The notes beneath the pieces are model-generated. The model saw nothing but the letters and a program-made list of their open reading frames with translations, had not been told where the DNA came from and did no database searches. A program made the translations under genes and the position numbers. A stretch of DNA of 64,000 nucleotides, from positions 14,260,001 through 14,324,000 of the forward strand of contig NC_135763.1 in assembly GCF_052425735.1 (NCBI RefSeq), in the 5' to 3' direction. This document shows positions 18,501 through 46,207 of the stretch, piece by piece. The stretch is from Oculina patagonica. Its lineage: Eukaryota. Position 1 is the first letter of the stretch, and each line of letters begins with the position of its first letter.

Positions 18501-19069
18501 TTAAAAATTAGAACAAACTTTGATGTGCATTGAGCAGATAGAAAAACAAAGTAAGAAATAATTATTATTTGACTGAATCGTTATCAATACAACATGTATG
18601 GCATTCAATTAAAAGTTTTTGTTTGTTGAAGTCAACGTTGTTTAATTTGTACATTCATTTTCCTTTTGCTTATATTTGCCGTTGCATAACGATTTTTTCA
18701 CTCCTGCTCCAAAGTTTCCTCTGCTTGTAGGGGGCAATGTTTCAATACGCAACCTGTTAAAGCGTGTCACCCTCGCTCCCTCCATTTATTGAGCACAGCC
18801 ACCAGCAGCAAGGCCAAATCTAATAGTTTACCACATCAAAATCAATTTTTCTGCGTTTCAGACTACAATTAATCCACATGACTCGATAAACAACCTAAAA
18901 ACAGCCATAAAAACAATCCTTGAAATCATCTGTGAGGCTAAGTGAAGAAAGTAGTTGACTATTCCCAGAGAGTAATTTGTTGTACTGCAAAATTAGTGAT
19001 GTTTCAATGTTATCTTCTTAGACTTGGTTTTGTCGATTGTTAAATTCTGGAGAAGTGAAAAAACTTTCA

Positions 19070-19620
19070 GATGCCAACGGGCCTAGAGTACAGTTAAATC
19101 TTTTAACTAAACCCTCAGTCTGTGGGTGATAACTGGACGTGTTTACATTGTGAATTTGAAAAAAAAACTTGCAAACTTCAGCTAGTAGTTTTGATATAAG
19201 GTTCTTTCCTCTATAAGAAAGCAGCACTTTTGGAGCACCATGCCTAGCAATGATTTCGTCAACAAACAGGCGAGCAATAACAGTAGCTTCAGCATCGGGA
19301 ACTGCAAATGATTCGCACCAAATGGAAGGTAATGGCTAAAAACAACAATGCACCTATTACCCTTCCTTTACGGTGGAAATGGGCCTGAAATATCAACAGC
19401 TACCCTTTCGAATGCATTGCTGACAGAAATACGAAATAATGGTGGTCTCTTATAGAGATCCTTCGTGGTCTCCTTATTGAGCAATCCTGACAAGACTCAC
19501 AGCAGTGCTCAACGTCTTTAAAGATGCCTTTCCACAAGTACCTTCGCTTAGCCTTCTGAAAAGTTTTGTGAACTCCGAAATGATCACCAGAAACATGATC
19601 ATGGACCTAAGATAAGACTT
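19070..19620 (-). pseudogene. Gypsy integrase remnant (HHCC plus rve core)
   Basis: HDHVSGDHFGVHKTFQK...YLWKGIFKDVEHC, RLFVDEIIARHGAPKVLLS.RGKN, SSYHPQTEGLVKRFN. Confidence 0.85.
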
Positions 19621-30500: not shown

Positions 30501-31868
30501 CAAAACACAAACTATTAATTACAATATATATACAATATAAGGTTCTATTATAAACAAGCTAGTTCGAGATTTATAGCGAGAAGTGACGAAGTCCTGAGAA
30601 TGCTTCGTTCTGCAAGACTTGATGGTGCTACGACTTGTGCCGGATCTTAAATTGCAGTCATCCCTAGAAATAGTGTAAGCTGAATTTTCAAACAAGCACA
30701 AGATGAAACTTAATCCTTCTAAATGCAACAAAATGTTGATCAATTTTATGAGTAAACACCCAAACGCCGTTTGATATGACTCCACCAGTTCCTACTATTT
30801 GATTGGTAGAAACGTTTCTTAGCAGATTTTACGACGTGTAGAACAACTCTAACAGTGACTGGTACTTGTCCCAGAAGGCCTTGGTTGTTGCCAGTTGGGA
30901 AACAGTGTTTCTCGGTTACTTAAAGAACCACTCTTCATATTTTTGGATATGTTTGTGACGTCATAAAGTAAAGCATTTAAGTTTTTAAACAACAAGAAAA
31001 GGCAAGAAATATTTTGTTCAAGTTAACTGCTGTGATAACACAAAAATGCAGGTTCAATACAAATAGTTCTGTGGTATAATTTAATTTTTTTTAATTTTCT
31101 TACCTGCCAAAAATTGTAATTTAATTTCCTATTTTTTTTGCTATGATAGGCCTGCCACTTGATGGTCACTTGACATTTTTCCCTGGAGAGTACCCTCCAA
31201 AGCTTCACTGGTGGACCCGCACCTTTTGGAAGTTTTTGGTTGGGAGCTCATAATTTAAAACAATGTGTTGTTGACAAGTTTTGCCATAATATTTTGATGT
31301 CAATAATACGTTTTTATATATTTTGCTTTTGTTTCCTGACTAAAATGTTCCACCTTAATGCTCCATTTTTCCTACTTAATGCACGGAAAATACTTTTGAC
31401 ACAAAGGGTTTATTAATTATTTTAACTGTTAACACTTACAAAAGTTTCGCAAGTAACAGTAACCACATATTCAAGGTCATATAAACAGCAAAAAAACATA
31501 ATCTTCGAAATGATCTGCAAGGCTAAGTAAGGGAAGTAGTTGACTATCCCTAGAAAGTGATTAAAATATTCTAAGAAGTGTACTTGTTGATTGTTGAGTT
31601 ATGTAGAAATGAAAAAAAAAGTAAATTTTTTTAATTAAACCATCATTCTCTGGGTGATAAGTTAACATGTTTACATTGCGAATTTGAATAATCCTGCAAG
31701 TTTCAGCTAGTAGTTTTAAAAGTAAGTCCTTTCCTCTATAAAGAAGGAGCACTTTAGAACCACCATTCTTAGCAATGATTTCATCAACCAACAGACGAGC
31801 AATTACAGAAGCTTCAGTATCGGAACTGCAAATGCCTCGCACCAAAAGGTTAGGTAATGGCTAAAAAC
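26501..31868 (+). repeat. Segmental duplication, copy A (copy B = 35210-41465)
   Basis: 26501-28631 matches 35210-37325 (offset 8709 at the start, identical ORF translations). 30508-31868 matches 37336-37575 plus 40291-41465. Confidence 0.9.
28560..28640 (-). mobile_element. 3' tail of an L2/CR1-type LINE
   Basis: Minus strand ...CTCTGTAATTCAGTTATTACTGCAATGAGTTTCCAATAAAC followed by a (TTA)n tail. Confidence 0.45.
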
Positions 31869-40292: not shown

Positions 40293-41189
40293 AGTAAACA
40301 CCCAAACGCCGTTTGATGACTCCACCAGTTCCTACTATTTGATTGGCAGAAACGTTTCTTAGCAGATTTTACGACAAGTGTAGAACAACTCTAACAGTGG
40401 CTGGTACTTGTCCCAGAAGGCCTTGGCTGTTGCCAGTTGGGAAACAATGTTTCTCGGTCACTTAAAGAACAACTTTTCATATTTTTGGATATGTTTGTGA
40501 CCTCATAAAGTAAAGCATTTAAGTTTTTAAACAACAGAAAAGGCAAGAAATATTTTGTTCAAGTTAACTGCTGTGATAACACAAAAATGCAGGTTTAATC
40601 GAAGAGTTCTGTGGTATAATATATATTTTTTAATTTCCTTACCTGCAAACAAATAGTAATGTAATTTACTATTTTTTTTTCTATGATAGGCCTGCCACTT
40701 GATGGTCACTTGACTTTTTTTCCCTGGAGAGTACTCTCCAAAGCTTCACTGGTGGATCCGCACCTTTTGGAAGTTTTTGATATTTTTTGGTTGGGAGCTT
40801 ATAATTTAAAACAATGTGTTGTTGACAAGTTTTGGTTACAGCTGCCATAATATTTTGATGTCAATAATACGTTTTTATATATTTTGCTTTTGTTTCCTGA
40901 CTAAAATGTTTCACCTTAATGCTCCATTTTTCCTACTTAAATGCACGGAAAATACTTATGACACAAAGGGTTTATTAATTATTTTAACTGTTAACACTTA
41001 CGAAAGTTTTGCAAGTAACAGCAACCACATATTCAAGGTCATAACAACAGCAAAAAAAAACATAATCCTCGAAATTATTTGCAAGGCTAAGTAAGGAAAG
41101 TAGTTGACTATCCCTAGAAATTAATTAAAATCTTCTAAGAAGTGTTCTTGTTGATTGTTGAATTTTGTAGAAATGAAAAAAAAAAACCT

Positions 41190-41465
41190 CTTTCAGATGC
41201 CAACAGGCATAGAGTAGAGTAAACTTTTTCAATTAAACCATCATTCTCTGGGTGATAAGTTAACATGTTTACATTGCAAATTTGAAAAATCCTGCAAGTT
41301 TCAGCTAGTAGTTTTAAAAGTAAGTTCTTTCCTCTAAAACAAAAGCAGCACTTTAGAACCACATTCTTAGCAATGATTTCATCAACCAACAGGCGAGCAA
41401 TTACAGAAGCTTCAGTATCAAAACTGCAAATGCCTCGCACCAAAAGGTTAGATAATGGCTAAAAA
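41190..41465 (-). pseudogene. Gypsy integrase remnant, third copy
   Basis: ARLLVDEIIAKN...TYHPENDGLIEKVYSTLCLLASE. Confidence 0.8.
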
Positions 41466-43285
41466 CTGTTGTAAATGTTTCTTTGGTTTCTAAGACTGTG
41501 CTTGCAAACAAAACAAACATGCGCAAGAGATTCAATCAGCGTTGATTCGGCACTTTCCATGGAAGAATGAAGTGCTCTACCAGCACATGCCTTCATTAAT
41601 CGTGCAGGGAAAACTAAGTACTCTTTGAAAAGCAAAGAGGTATTTGGAGAATGATTTAGATGAATTAAAAGGCATGCTATTTCTGTTGATAAAAAATGTA
41701 GTCGCGAATGTCCTGTCTGGGAAGCAGTTTTGGTCTCGAGGCCCTTTTGTATTCCCTTAGGTGATAGGTGATTACCTATCATGACCTTTCTACCATGTTC
41801 GTCCCTTACCATGAAAAATTTTTGAAGCCATTTTCAATAAAACACAGTTTCTTTCCTTGAGAAAACGATGATGTTCCTGCATGGTATGCGCTTTACTGAC
41901 TCCTGAAGCTTGCTCTCTTTCACTTCTTTTAGAAGCCGAAAGGGTTCTGAGTTCTTTGGCTCAGCTTGGATTGACAGAAAACAGAAGCAGCAACATTGTG
42001 ACGTCTATATGCAGTCGTGCCTTGATAGCACCTGAGGCCCCTTCCTACTTACTGAACAGTTTTCTAACAGTTTGAAAGCAGTTTCACAATTGGCATGCTT
42101 TTTTCAAAGACTTGCACCTTCTCCAACTGACTTCGCAATGCATGAAGTTGGTGGACAGCCTCTACATCTTTTTAGTCCTTACGGCTCTGATCTAAGTGAA
42201 TATACTTGGCAGAAATTAAAAGCGAGTGAATATAGTGAGCGGCTGTGGACTTCTGGACCACCTTTTGGTTTGCAAGTAATGCAACAATGATTCTACCAAT
42301 GCCATGTCATCTACTAGGGCCAGTGCAGGTTTCCGATTTAACTCCTTCAAGGTGCAACTAAAGAATGTGACAAGTCGTTCCATGTGCTTCGCCCAAGTTG
42401 AATCAGTCATCATGGGTGTGCGTCTCCTGTAGTTAAGTATAGAAAGTTTTCATCTCATTTATTTCCATGATGACAGTTTTGAACGGGATGCAGTCTTATT
42501 TTCGTTTCTTCAACAGCAGAGCAACCTTGTTGCCATTTTCTTCATGTGGAAAGTTGCCTTTGACATGTGACCCAACGCTGTCTTCGTCTTCGTCACCGTC
42601 ATAGCTCGAACATTCTTCTTCCTGTGGTGGAAATTCTGACTCATCCTCGTTTCCACTTTCAGCACACTCTGGGATTTCAAGAGCCTCGGTCAAAAAAAGG
42701 TTTTTTGCTTGCGACACTAGCAGCAGTTGGGTGTGTTGGTTTCGTGATCTCGTCAATCGAAAACCTGTTTTTTTTTGCCTTTTTCTGGCAATCTATTTTG
42801 ACTAAAGACACTGTCAAAAAGGAAAGCTGATAATTTGCTAAGCCTTGCCTGTCGACTGATCCCTTTTAACTTTCATAACAGCACTATTGCATTCAGTTGT
42901 CTTAAAATGGACCCTATTCTCAAATGGAATAGAACTACAACTTTCAATAAACTTTGTGCTTTCATTTTAAGCACGTGATTGGTGATTAGCTTGCAGTACT
43001 AATACGTCTCGCTTAGTAATTAGTGAAATTACTTTATAACTAGCTAGTTGTGGTCTGGCCTTTCTGACCTTCTTTTGAATGTTTGTAGGGCATCTGACTA
43101 GATAAATTCGTAATGCTTGCATGAAGGATTTTATTGTTTGTCTCGGCGTTCCACTGAAGACTTTCTTGCATACTTCTATGAAAGCATGGTACATCTTGCC
43201 ATCGTTGTCTAACACTGTAAACAATGTTTCGATCGGGTCGCTGCTCTCTCGGTCAACAGTAGCATAGGGTGCGTCCTCAGTTACC
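41466..43285 (-). pseudogene. Tyrosine recombinase with N-terminal Ski/Sno/Dachshund-like domain, disrupted
   Basis: N-terminal QTIKSFMQALRIYLVRCP...SLITKRDVLVL, then an acidic linker and a helical domain. Catalytic motifs: FSVNPS*AKELRTL (Arg codon now TGA), FINRNSMPF, TINE.RHVLVEHF, ESLAH...KHSLRNQRNIY. Confidence 0.65.
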
Positions 43286-43785
43286 TAATAATTGTAAGTA
43301 AAAATGCTACCGAATAAGCACTTAAGCCATTTGCAAACATTTGTTTTAAATAAATTCTCAAGCCTTGAGAAAATGAATATGTAATGTGAATGAAAATAAC
43401 TGGATCTCTGCCGACCTCAAACCTGATGGAGAGCAAGTTTAAATCACCGACTTTGAACTGTCGCCCAAATTTAAAGCAACCAAATTAAATGGCTGTGGTT
43501 TGAAATATGCTTGAGAATCTCTAATGTTCTCAAACTGACCCTTGTTGAGATAGGGGGTCGAGGGGTGAGGGAGGGGTACACTCACACGAGTCCATGTACC
43601 TGTTACATTTAAATTAATTTTCGTCCAAATACACAACTGTTCATAACTTTTGACAAAGCGATTTGGGTTAGGGATTTTTCTTTAATCAACATGACGCTTA
43701 AACACTTCAGCCATTTAACAGATCGATTTCCACACCAAAATTAATTCGATTTGTAAAAAGAAATAAATAGGTGAATAAATAAATA

Positions 43786-46207
43786 AACAAGACGCCTAAA
43801 GCTTAATGCTTAAAACCGGGCGGTTGATGTTTAACAAGTACAGCAAAAACTTTTAAAATACCATTTAATTTATATTGAGTAACACGCAAGTCTGTGGATT
43901 GCTTGTCCATGCTTGGACAAATACCTGCTTAGGCTTTCAAATTTTTATTTTTCTTCCGAATACTGAATAACGTAGGTATTGAAAACGTTTTGTGTGCAAT
44001 CTTGAATAAATGAACTCAAACCAGTTAAATGGCAGTACAAATGATCTCCGACCGAAACAAACAAACAAACAATTTCGTTAAAAACTAAGACGTGTTTTTA
44101 CATGTAAACATTTTTAAAAAGGTACCACACCAAAAAAATGGGAATAAGAACAAGATAAGAAAGCTTTTCAGCTTTCAAACATGCAAGCTCTTTACGTCAA
44201 TTTTGGGAAGCAGTCACGCAAACGCAAGTTCTTGATTGCGTGATTCATTGCAGGTCATTTCTCCATCGCCGTTCGGTTCCGACTGAAACTCAAAACCCTT
44301 GAATGAAAAACAAAAAATATATATTTTATATTCCTCGCTAAAAAGAGCGGAGTAACCAGAAAATTACAGTATTGGCTCCTGCTCGAATAAAACGAGTAAC
44401 ATAAATAATAAAAAAAACGAATAAAACGAGTCAAATATCAAGAATAACAGAAAAATTTCTAAACAAAATTACAAAAGAAAATAAAAAGACTAAAAAAGGG
44501 CATGCATTAGACCACATGTATTAGATAACAGATGCTGTTAAAAATCTCAAGTAAATGTGAAAAAAAAGATTCAAGATGAGGCGAAGAAACATTTGAATTG
44601 CATTAAAAATTTTGAATCCTTAAAAGCCGTGAAAATACTGATGCCGTGATAAAATAATTAATTATACGCGCCGAAGGGCAAGTTTTCATTTTTGCCGTCT
44701 ATTATTTCACACGATGGCTTTACCGATTTACATTCCATTCTAGTTTGAAGAAATTATTATATTATTACTTTGCATTTCCATTTTGTTTTATGAGTTCTTG
44801 AAAAGTGTGCAAGTAAAGTTTTTACATCAAGAACAAAATAAGGTTCTTTTGTTGTGTAAACATTCAATTCGTCTGTGACACACGACTTTGTCGGCCCAAC
44901 TGTACACGGATGGAAATAGACAAAATGGACACAATTCTTGCTAAATGAAAAGCATCTTCAAAGTAGAGTCTGGAGCCGTTTTTAAATGCAGGAGCTTGCT
45001 GCAAAAACATTGCGTGACTGATGTAAAAAAAGCTTCGACCTCAGCGACCTGTCGAAACAATCACCGGTTTCGGACTCCAGAACTCGCTTGAGTCGAACCC
45101 TTGAATAAAAACACAAAAATATATCTTTCACGTTTAACAGAAATCGGGGTATTAGATAAAATTTTAATTGCTCCTGCTGAGTAAATATCAAAAGTGCGGT
45201 ATCTAAATCCTGGCCAAGAAAGCGGCCGAGTGAACTACTACGACAAATAACGCAAATATGTAAACATCAACATGGTGCCTCAATCTATAAATAGATGCCG
45301 TGTTCGTTTCAAAAGCCTAAAAAGGCAACTATTAAATACAAACGTGAAAAAATAAAAAAGAAACATGAAAACGTTTTAGATGAATTTTAATTCAAGATGG
45401 GGTCAAGAAACATTTTAAAAGGCAAAAAGATTTAGAAAATTTCAAAAACGTGAAATTTGCATGCCGTGGTAGAATTTAATTACTGTACATGTATAAAATT
45501 ACCCGCGCCAAGATTTCATTTTCATTTTGCAGACCATTTGTTTTACTTGCTGGCTTTGCGGATCCCTTCACAAATACCATCATAGTTCGTAGAAATACTA
45601 TACATTACCATTTTGTTGACTGAAGTCTTGGGAAGTGTGTAAGTAAAGCTTTTACATCAAGAACAAAAATAAGATTATTTCGCTGTGCAAACATTCAATC
45701 GTCTCTGATATGCGACTTTGCCGGCTCAACTGTACACGGATGAAAATGGACACAATTTTTTCTATTAAATGAAGAGCATCTTCAAAGTAATCCGGCTCAA
45801 AAATTCTCTGGCTACCAGCCCTTTTTTAAAAGCAGTTATGCGTGAAGCTTGCTGCAAAATCATTGCGTGACTGACGTAGCAGTTTTCAAAAAAAAAAAAA
45901 TAATAATTGCTTGGACGTGTCAAAAAAATCACCGGTTTCGCAAACCAGTACTCAAACACTTGAATAACACAAAAATATATATTTCACGCTTAAGAGAATT
46001 GAGGGTATTAGATAAAATTTAAAATAGGAGAGTGATTTAATAGCTTCTGCCGAGTAAACATCAAGGGTGCGTGATTTGAATCCTGGCCAAGAAAGTGGCC
46101 GAGCGGGTCTGGAACGATTTACCGACAAGACTACTACTACTACGACGACGAAAAAATTCCGGGCGATTTATGAACCGGGCCGGCCCAGTCTCCCCGCCCG
46201 GTTAATA
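43786..46207 (-). mobile_element. Helentron-associated non-autonomous element (HINE/DINE-like) with large internal tandem repeats
   Basis: On the minus strand: 5' TTATTAACCGGGCGG subTIR with nearby inverted GCCCGGTT, then a (GTC/GTA)n microsatellite, then about 2.5 units of 0.8-0.9 kb, then the 3' subTIR CCGCCCGGTT, an AAGCATTAAGCTT hairpin and TCTTGTT. Confidence 0.7.

Follow-up and report, generated by a model that had tools for sequence, protein, structure and literature searches.

A probable mobile-element family joining a Ski/Sno/Dachshund-like domain to a tyrosine recombinase, with a decayed copy in the coral Oculina patagonica

The DNA considered here is a 64,000-nucleotide stretch of the Oculina patagonica genome (NCBI RefSeq assembly GCF_052425735.1, contig NC_135763.1, positions 14,260,001 to 14,324,000 of the forward strand), which we call the window. 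Its minus strand carries, from 43663 to 41467 in window coordinates, the remains of a gene of ~730 amino acids (aa) whose intact relatives combine an N-terminal domain resembling the Ski/Sno/Dachshund homology domain (DHD) with a tyrosine recombinase. We think it probable (at roughly 0.68) that the stretch is a dead, 3′-truncated copy of a tyrosine-recombinase element family and, with the same probability, that this family is a Crypton-like DNA element that is present in low copy number and has long-lived resident copies. A first-pass annotation of the window, made by reading the sequence by eye, had proposed a fusion of this kind at 41466-43285 and had regarded it as the remnant of a mobile element.

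Extent and decay of the window copy

The extent of the gene was established by alignment to relatives. In a frameshift-aware alignment to an intact relative (P0054), the window copy is collinear with residues 15-584 over 43230-41468, with 285/547 identities, about 11 frameshifts, and nine in-frame stops. Across 43300-41460, the minus strand offers a number of short open pieces and no long open reading frame (ORF). The 85-aa ORF at 42967-43224, in which the Ski/Dachshund likeness was first seen, is real and lies inside a 105-codon open stretch (42970-43284), the longest N-terminal piece. Ten pieces of the window copy gave nothing significant against Pfam, and PDB sequence searches (phmmer) with the two largest pieces were empty.

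A related coral contig (L020) matches 42929-43663 at 90% identity, with 740 bp in common, and its flanks are unrelated to those of the window on both sides. Because this match has a sharp start common to both copies (43663 in the window and L020:9527), the 5′ end of the element can be placed at 43663, upstream of the piece described first. The remnant stops at 41467 because another repeat cuts there, and not because the gene naturally ends at that point. Thus, both edges of the original extent needed correction, and the alignment of flanks that had been suggested as a way to define the element ends delivered the 5′ end (with L020) and no 3′ end. Given that the cut falls two codons past the catalytic Tyr codon, the final ~140 residues of the family are absent from the window copy; the 3′ truncation likewise accounts for the lack of the RING-finger ORF that follows intact copies (see below).

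All parts of the copy are on the minus strand. A noncoding leader (43258-43663) has 90% identity to L020:9527-~9930, and high-depth related contigs from one sequencing run (X5) cover 43248-43573. The start codon has apparently been lost, judging from the alignment of GTT at 43255-43257 with the start Met of relatives (“TVDRESS” in the window vs. “MDRISSS” at the start of P0054). The DHD-like winged-helix domain follows at 42970-43230 in an open frame, with TAA at 42967-42969, and is 47-87% identical to the N-terminal domains of the family. Beyond it are a decayed engrailed-homology-1 (eh1)-like motif, “FSIDEIT,” at 42743-42763 (the family form is FSIDHIL or FLVENLL), and, by alignment to relatives, an acidic linker rich in Ser, Glu, and Asp at 42499-42665, ending in “LLLKKRK.” The core-binding (SAM-like) N-terminal domain of the recombinase spans 42067-42449 in two frames, with a stop at 42172-42174.

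The catalytic domain remnant (41468-42044) was delimited by the P0054 alignment and by the likeness of the family model to the folds of Cre, XerH, IntI, and lambda Int; it contains several frameshifts and stops. Within it, TGA at 41961-41963 replaces the first catalytic Arg (Arg I; “NPS*AKELRTL” vs. “NPGRAKELRTL” in relatives), and the catalytic Tyr codon, recognized from the alignment and the pattern across relatives, is at 41471-41473 in “KHSLRNQRNIY.” Still readable are “PCTIN” followed by “RHVLVEHF,” as well as “SLAHVCFVCKHSLRNQRNIY”. The motifs reported in the first-pass annotation (the Arg as TGA, N..RH, and SLA...HS...Q..IY) are therefore all present. With the start codon and the first catalytic Arg lost, the frame broken repeatedly, and the tail cut off, the window copy is unable to act. 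BLAST of the region against the window found no second copy of the element within the 64 kb; only the neighboring repeat recurs.

Relatives and their shared domain order

A HMMER scan of 1.84 billion representative proteins with the 105-aa piece returned 20 matches, two of them long (P0004, 634 aa, and P0005, 728 aa). Further relatives were recovered by a word-index search with P0005 (n = 38), by a profile search (n = 59), and by using the most divergent member as the query (two more). In total, the family comprises ~60 relatives, at least 23 of which are full-length, intronless, and 670-793 aa long. Relatives with a named source are anthozoan only, from the stony coral Desmophyllum pertusum (KAJ7351049/50) and the octocoral Dendronephthya gigantea (proteins with just the N-terminal domain). 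The remainder come from metagenome assemblies, Tara samples among these.

The alignment of the family shows a fixed order. An N-terminal domain of ~80 residues comes first and is followed by a short conserved motif, an acidic linker rich in Ser, and a helical region; the catalytic region and a C-terminal domain of ~100 residues complete the protein. In the full-length relatives (at least 23), the N-terminal domain and the recombinase are encoded in a single uninterrupted ORF. The arrangement originally read from the broken window copy, in which the N-terminal domain is followed by acidic linker, helical core-binding region, and catalytic region, is borne out by the P0054 alignment.

Some members depart from this plan. 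The two D. gigantea proteins (P0017 and P0057; XP_028418854 and XP_028419049; 195 and 272 aa, respectively) have only the DHD-like domain, at 32% identity to the window ORF, and may be solo-domain derivatives. Another protein (P0013, 1432 aa) contains some 28 tandem units of ~50 aa (“...FxxNCRKVFATTKRQIISS...”) similar to the first half of the DHD, and it gave 12 matched stretches in the search with the 105-aa piece. In P0006, a DHD fragment is fused to sequence that reads by eye as the tail of a long interspersed nuclear element, for which there was no Pfam match.

Fold and catalytic residues of the recombinase

An AlphaFold2 (AF2) model of residues 207-728 has a mean predicted local distance difference test score (pLDDT) of 65.6, with values of 80-93 in the core-binding part. 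The Foldseek list for this model is dominated by Cre, XerA, the Tn1549 integrase, and XerH (probability up to 0.99, E 7e-3). With VIA-align, tyrosine recombinases or their N-terminal domains (SroF, XerH, an integron integrase, Brujita Int, Cre, XerA, Tn1549 Int, and lambda Int) fill 10 of the top 12 rows, and the other two are Ndc10 D1. Eight of the recombinase rows are full-length, and in these 236-281 residues are aligned over both domains at Z 8.2-10.1. The core-binding part (residues 23-150 of the family model) matches integrase N-terminal domains and D1 of Ndc10, a Crypton-derived protein, at Z 8.8. Phage_int_SAM_1/5 gave subthreshold matches in six of 14 members (E ~0.01). The catalytic residues are recognizable throughout, as NPGR.., [FY]KT, and N-x2-RH occur in 23/23 full-length members, and the strict pattern KH[ST]xRxQxxxY occurs in 21/23.

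Three points weigh against this assignment. The second His of the canonical catalytic set (His-II) is Asn throughout, the sole departure from the set; the Pfam Phage_integrase profile (PF00589) matches no member (E ≤ 10); and the catalytic-domain part of the model is of low confidence (pLDDT 45-67). It should be noted that the catalytic part, like the BAH-like part described below, was read from a medium-confidence model of 522 residues that was searched whole. We nevertheless accept the family as tyrosine recombinases, with a predicted two-domain fold and catalytic residues kept, and we expect intact members to be catalytically active. The profile check proposed in the first-pass annotation gave a Ski_Sno match above the Pfam threshold for one divergent member (P0128; see below) and no match for Phage_integrase, the recombinase being recognized by fold and catalytic residues instead. 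A profile search for distant relatives of the recombinase returned family members only (all E < 1e-25) and so provides no bridge to a known eukaryotic recombinase group.

Accessory modules and a downstream RING-finger ORF

Between the DHD and the acidic linker, 19 of the 23 full-length members have FSIDHIL, FSISHIL, FSIEHIL, or FLVENLL. These heptads fit the F-x-I/V-x-x-I/L-L eh1 pattern, a pattern that binds Groucho/TLE. The C-terminal domain (model residues 417-509) aligns with BAH1 of DNMT1 over 76 residues (Z 7.3, root-mean-square deviation [rmsd] 2.2). About 10 other BAH entries, including MTA1, ORC1, EBS, ASI1, AIPP3, TNRC18, and PBRM1, follow at Z 5-6, and there are weaker Tudor matches as well. 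Pfam gave no match for this domain. On the strength of the modeled fold, we regard it with moderate confidence as a BAH-like barrel.

Wherever the sequence of a locus extends far enough, a conserved ORF of ~135 aa is present on the same strand 0.6-1.2 kb downstream of the recombinase gene, and this holds for all subfamilies, D. pertusum and the window’s own subfamily (in L021) included. The Cys/His pattern of the ORF does not vary, and each of the six copies sampled matches zf-RING_2 below threshold (best E 1.6e-5). Copies are found at L009:3605-4009, L013:14474-14869, L014:9702-10094, L001:13352-13741, L015:14967-15311, and L021:4261-4488. Because this RING ORF is found downstream across subfamilies, the conserved unit consists of two genes. 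At L013, the 5′ part of the RING ORF is triplicated in 1-kb tandem units.

Mobile element or host gene

The question of how the family persists in genomes is best approached from its copies. The window copy and L020 sit in unrelated contexts and have their 5′ end in common, and the L021 copy is close to intact, having a single frameshift and two stops. Contig word depth suggests that related sequences are numerous. In run X5, contigs 86-90% like the element have a depth of 2230-2650, compared with 58-73 for near-identical single-locus contigs; the corresponding values for element-like and window-locus contigs are ~240 vs. 19-30 in X12 and 113 vs. 25-37 in X1. Several of the frame-breaking indels of the window copy are not in the high-depth contigs. 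Pfam matches to reverse transcriptase were absent from the neighboring called genes looked up within up to 10 kb around intact copies, in agreement with the earlier observation that no DIRS-type reverse transcriptase is adjacent. The lack of an adjacent reverse transcriptase, the unrelated sites, and the high-depth contigs that indicate many copies together lead us to read the family as a Crypton-like DNA transposon.

If so, the element would move as DNA in the manner of a Crypton: The recombinase would excise it as a circle, and reinsertion would proceed by strand exchange through the Tyr nucleophile. The DHD could serve as a sequence-specific DNA-binding module for the element ends or the target, the BAH-like domain may steer the protein toward marked chromatin, and the eh1-like motif may recruit a Groucho/TLE co-repressor.

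Several observations weigh against a freely mobile element. The 5′ boundary is the only element end that has been fixed, and the terminus pair, the target-site signature, and the circle junction are undefined, so the first-pass view of the window copy as a mobile-element remnant holds as likely (repeated copies, unrelated flanks) with its ends defined on one side only. Contig word depth is a rough proxy for copy number. The roles proposed for the DHD, the eh1 motif, the BAH-like domain, and the RING ORF follow solely from what these domains are. The best-sampled intact genes, those of the P0005 type, occur at one locus, collinear for 6-10 kb downstream in three lineages, across which dN/dS (the ratio of nonsynonymous to synonymous divergence) is 0.15-0.22 at dS 0.22-0.40, and the P0046 gene occupies a single locus in each of the eight places listed, of 24 contigs. 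Synteny combined with purifying selection is the behavior of a host-resident gene and not of a freely moving transposon.

A host gene is, accordingly, a live and serious rival, even though we judge it unlikely. The family would then be an old domesticated or resident recombinase paired with a RING-finger gene, acting on chromatin or transcription as a factor or carrying out programmed recombination, and the window would hold a duplicated pseudogene. Such a gene would account for the syntenic orthologs under selection and for the fixed P0046 locus, and it would suit a protein with transcription-factor-like parts (DHD, eh1-like motif, and BAH-like domain); moreover, Crypton-derived host genes are known (PMC3212892). 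However, loss of the catalytic site is reported for Crypton-derived genes, Cbf2 and Gcr1 among them (PMC3212892), whereas here the catalytic residues are kept across 23 members (the strict H...Y pattern in 21 of them). A host gene also fits poorly with decayed copies at unrelated, transposon-rich sites, with high-depth related contigs that suggest tens of copies in one species, and with sharp 5′ boundaries common to copies that have unrelated upstream flanks. We therefore retain the Crypton-like element with long-lived resident copies as the more probable description.

Identity of the N-terminal domain

The fold at issue is that of the DHD, a beta-beta-alpha-alpha-beta-alpha-wing-alpha winged helix, and the family model has it. 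The AF2 model of the N-terminal domain, built from 25 family sequences, has a pLDDT of 90.8. In a Foldseek search of the PDB, the first 12 rows are all DHDs of SKIL (3eq5), SKI (1sbx), and DACH1 (1l8r), with TM scores of 0.66-0.78 and an rmsd mostly of 1.5-2.7 Å. VIA-align, which is independent of Foldseek, aligned 83 of 94 residues and gave Z 11.2 and rmsd 1.8 for 3eq5, and Z 11.1 and rmsd 1.9 for 1l8r; the runners-up were the SMARCB1 winged helix (Z 8.7) and generic MerR-type folds (Z 5-6). The register assigned by eye agrees with the predicted order of helices and strands. At the sequence level, the divergent, full-length member P0128 matches Pfam Ski_Sno_DHD (PF02437) over residues 3-79 with 28.9 bits (E 9.8e-7), above the gathering cut-off of 24.5. 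Its domain is homologous to that of the rest of the family (hhalign against the family N-domain profile, probability 99.1%, E 1.6e-18; BLASTP against the window ORF, E 1e-9). We accept the N-terminal domain as a predicted DHD, and the Ski/Dachshund identity first suggested for the window ORF is thus backed by the AF2 model, two aligners, and the Pfam match of P0128.

It is very improbable that the domain is instead a generic winged helix of the KilA-N/Bro-N or MerR kind, with a convergent or trivial likeness to Ski and Dachshund. This could be argued from the identity of only 12-19% to the solved human DHDs, from the absence of any PDB chain matched by the family N-domain profile (hmmsearch), and from the Pfam result, in which the window ORF and the 25 sequences of the alignment used for modeling (A2) stay below the Ski_Sno_DHD threshold and just one of the 25 touches the profile, at E 0.11. 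Also, in a viral structure library, where the best matches are uncharacterized giant-virus proteins, KilA-N/Bro-N proteins of giant viruses and phages appear at lower scores. However, DHDs rank first in two independent aligners, 2.4 Z above SMARCB1 and 5 Z above the generic MerR-type folds, and P0128 exceeds a curated threshold while being homologous to the rest of the family. The viral matches fit a published relation of the Dachshund domain to KilA of DNA viruses and transposons (PMC3537659).

The remaining option, that the two halves are unrelated fragments brought together by chance in a transposon graveyard, has a negligible probability even in a region rich in broken transposons, because the domains, which the first-pass annotation had allowed might never co-occur in intact homologs, have the same order within a single uninterrupted ORF in 23 or more relatives, with which the window copy is collinear over 570 residues.

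Surroundings of the intact copies and of the window copy

At all loci of the P0005 type, there is one sharp breakpoint ~180 bp upstream of the ATG (“AGGTTCCTTTCTGTGGGG”), beyond which at least four unrelated upstream sequences occur (L009:640, L010:999, L012:3498, L019:3614, L013:9914, and L014:6474). The breakpoint might mark a hot spot for insertions or a site of attachment type next to the recombinase gene, or it might be an artefact of assembly. It could also be read as Starship-like (the recombinase gene at the 5′ edge of an element of >10 kb) or integron-like (an adjacent attachment site), with nothing obtained for or against either reading.

Position L009:12007, a sharp end common to L009 and L010, was considered as a 3′ end of the element and rejected. 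L013/L022 and L014 diverge from L009 at 10538 yet stay mutually collinear, and the candidate is further undercut by L010, which repeats part of the terminal segment. The stretch common to L009 and L010 (L009:11975-12007 and L010:12603-12729) ends in a small hairpin (CAGTGT..ACACTG), which was not accepted as an element end; in L010, a portion of the last 126 bp is found again 230 bp beyond.

Other features of these loci can be noted. One intact copy is immediately preceded upstream by three tightly packed same-strand ORFs (460, 254, and 120 aa; L019:1019-3558), of which the second and third share 4 bp; their layout looks viral or prokaryotic. Pfam gave no identity for these ORFs or for the ORFs downstream at L014 and L022. 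Long satellite arrays occur just upstream of intact copies in two species (L013:44-6681 and L015:1-9800), with units of 641 bp that include a 75-aa ORF at L013 and of ~85 bp and ~135 bp in D. pertusum.

In the window, the repeat that truncates the recombinase remnant (40801-41466) is unrelated to the element and outside it. The window has three copies of it on alternating strands, the other two being at 31250-31868 (88%) and 18896-19343 (74%). A 107-codon open stretch of this repeat (“YHPENDGLIEKV”) reads by eye as a fragment of a retroviral-type integrase, and the integrase-like stretch that abuts the recombinase remnant includes “TYHPENDGLIEKV”. Pfam gave no match for the 40801-41466 piece, and the integrase reading is unconfirmed. 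On the other side, a very high-copy repeat (43754-45000) starts ~90 bp beyond the 5′ end of the element; its summed contig word depth is in the thousands in four of four sequencing runs.

Relation to known elements and implications

Among described systems, the closest parallel is with Cryptons (CryptonA/F/I/S; Kojima and Jurka 2011, PMC3212892), in which a tyrosine recombinase is likewise the sole enzyme and reverse transcriptase is lacking. Long terminal repeats are absent at the one element end seen, also as in Cryptons. The CryptonF recombinase is fused to GCR1_C, so that an extra DNA-binding domain on the recombinase is common to both, and where some CryptonS have a C48 peptidase as a second small ORF, the present family has the RING ORF. 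The accessory domains in the Crypton survey are GCR1_C, DDE, C48, and HTH, with DUF3504 in the animal group, and Ski is unmentioned; the DHD, eh1-like motif, BAH-like barrel, and RING ORF are listed for no Crypton group (PMC3212892). The family has no Pfam match to DUF3504 (CryptonA type), and hhalign detects no relation to the DUF3504 Crypton fragment located 1.5 kb away in the window (probability 3.7%), consistent with the first-pass impression that the two are unlike. As regards the termini by which a Crypton is recognized, we found two copies with unrelated flanks and one common 5′ end, did not find the 3′ end or direct repeats, and note that the P0005 and P0046 types look single-locus.

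DIRS, Ngaro, PAT, and VIPER elements differ in having reverse transcriptase/RNase H, which is found beside no intact copy of the element. The integrase fragment read by eye beside the window copy belongs to a separate repeat and so contributes no retroelement part.

Developmental-regulator DNA-binding domains common to host transcription factors and tyrosine-recombinase elements have precedents in ALOG (DIRS1-type) and GCR1_C (CryptonF) (PMC3537659; PMC3212892), although these are part of, or specific to, the recombinase, whereas the DHD of the element is a separate module. It has the same whole-domain fold as the DHDs of Ski, SnoN, and Dachshund (PF02437; 1sbx, 3eq5, 1l8r; Z 11, TM 0.7-0.78). 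The contexts differ, given that Ski/SnoN/Dachshund are co-regulators of SMAD and Six-Eya and the element DHD forms the N-terminus of the enzyme of a repeated element, and, unlike the human domains, most element members are below the Pfam threshold, in line with their low identity.

The integrase of chromoviruses has a C-terminal beta-barrel of the chromatin-reader type that could steer insertion. The element enzyme resembles it in having a C-terminal barrel, but the chromovirus enzyme is a DDE integrase and that of the element a tyrosine recombinase, and the BAH-like call rests on fold matches of Z 5-7.

Full-text literature searches that paired Ski/Dachshund with tyrosine recombinase turned up no account of a fusion of this kind. 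The element DHD has low sequence identity to the DHDs of animals, which speaks against its having been captured recently from a host gene, and the narrow anthozoan range argues against the element as the source of a pan-animal domain. The link of the element to the origin of the Ski/Dachshund domain, which the first-pass annotation had raised, is speculation. Two further ideas are, taken together, distinctly doubtful: either the intact syntenic copies under selection are host-resident, catalytically competent recombinases whose transcription-factor-like targeting modules (DHD, Groucho-binding motif, BAH-like reader, and RING partner) would serve programmed DNA rearrangement or site-specific silencing in corals, or the animal and element DHDs share a mobile-element ancestor, as for ALOG and GCR1_C.

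Only a small number of eukaryotic transposons with tyrosine recombinases exist; they are poorly understood, and their choice of DNA sites is unexplained. The family offers a recombinase with three recognizable targeting or regulatory modules, a partner RING protein, and intact copies for biochemistry. It has been proposed that the Ski/Dachshund domain came from mobile or viral DNA (PMC3537659), and the presence of this domain, which is characteristic of developmental co-repressors in animals, within a repeated element makes that proposal testable by phylogeny. Should the syntenic copies under selection turn out to be host genes that keep an active site, a site-specific recombinase would be resident in corals.

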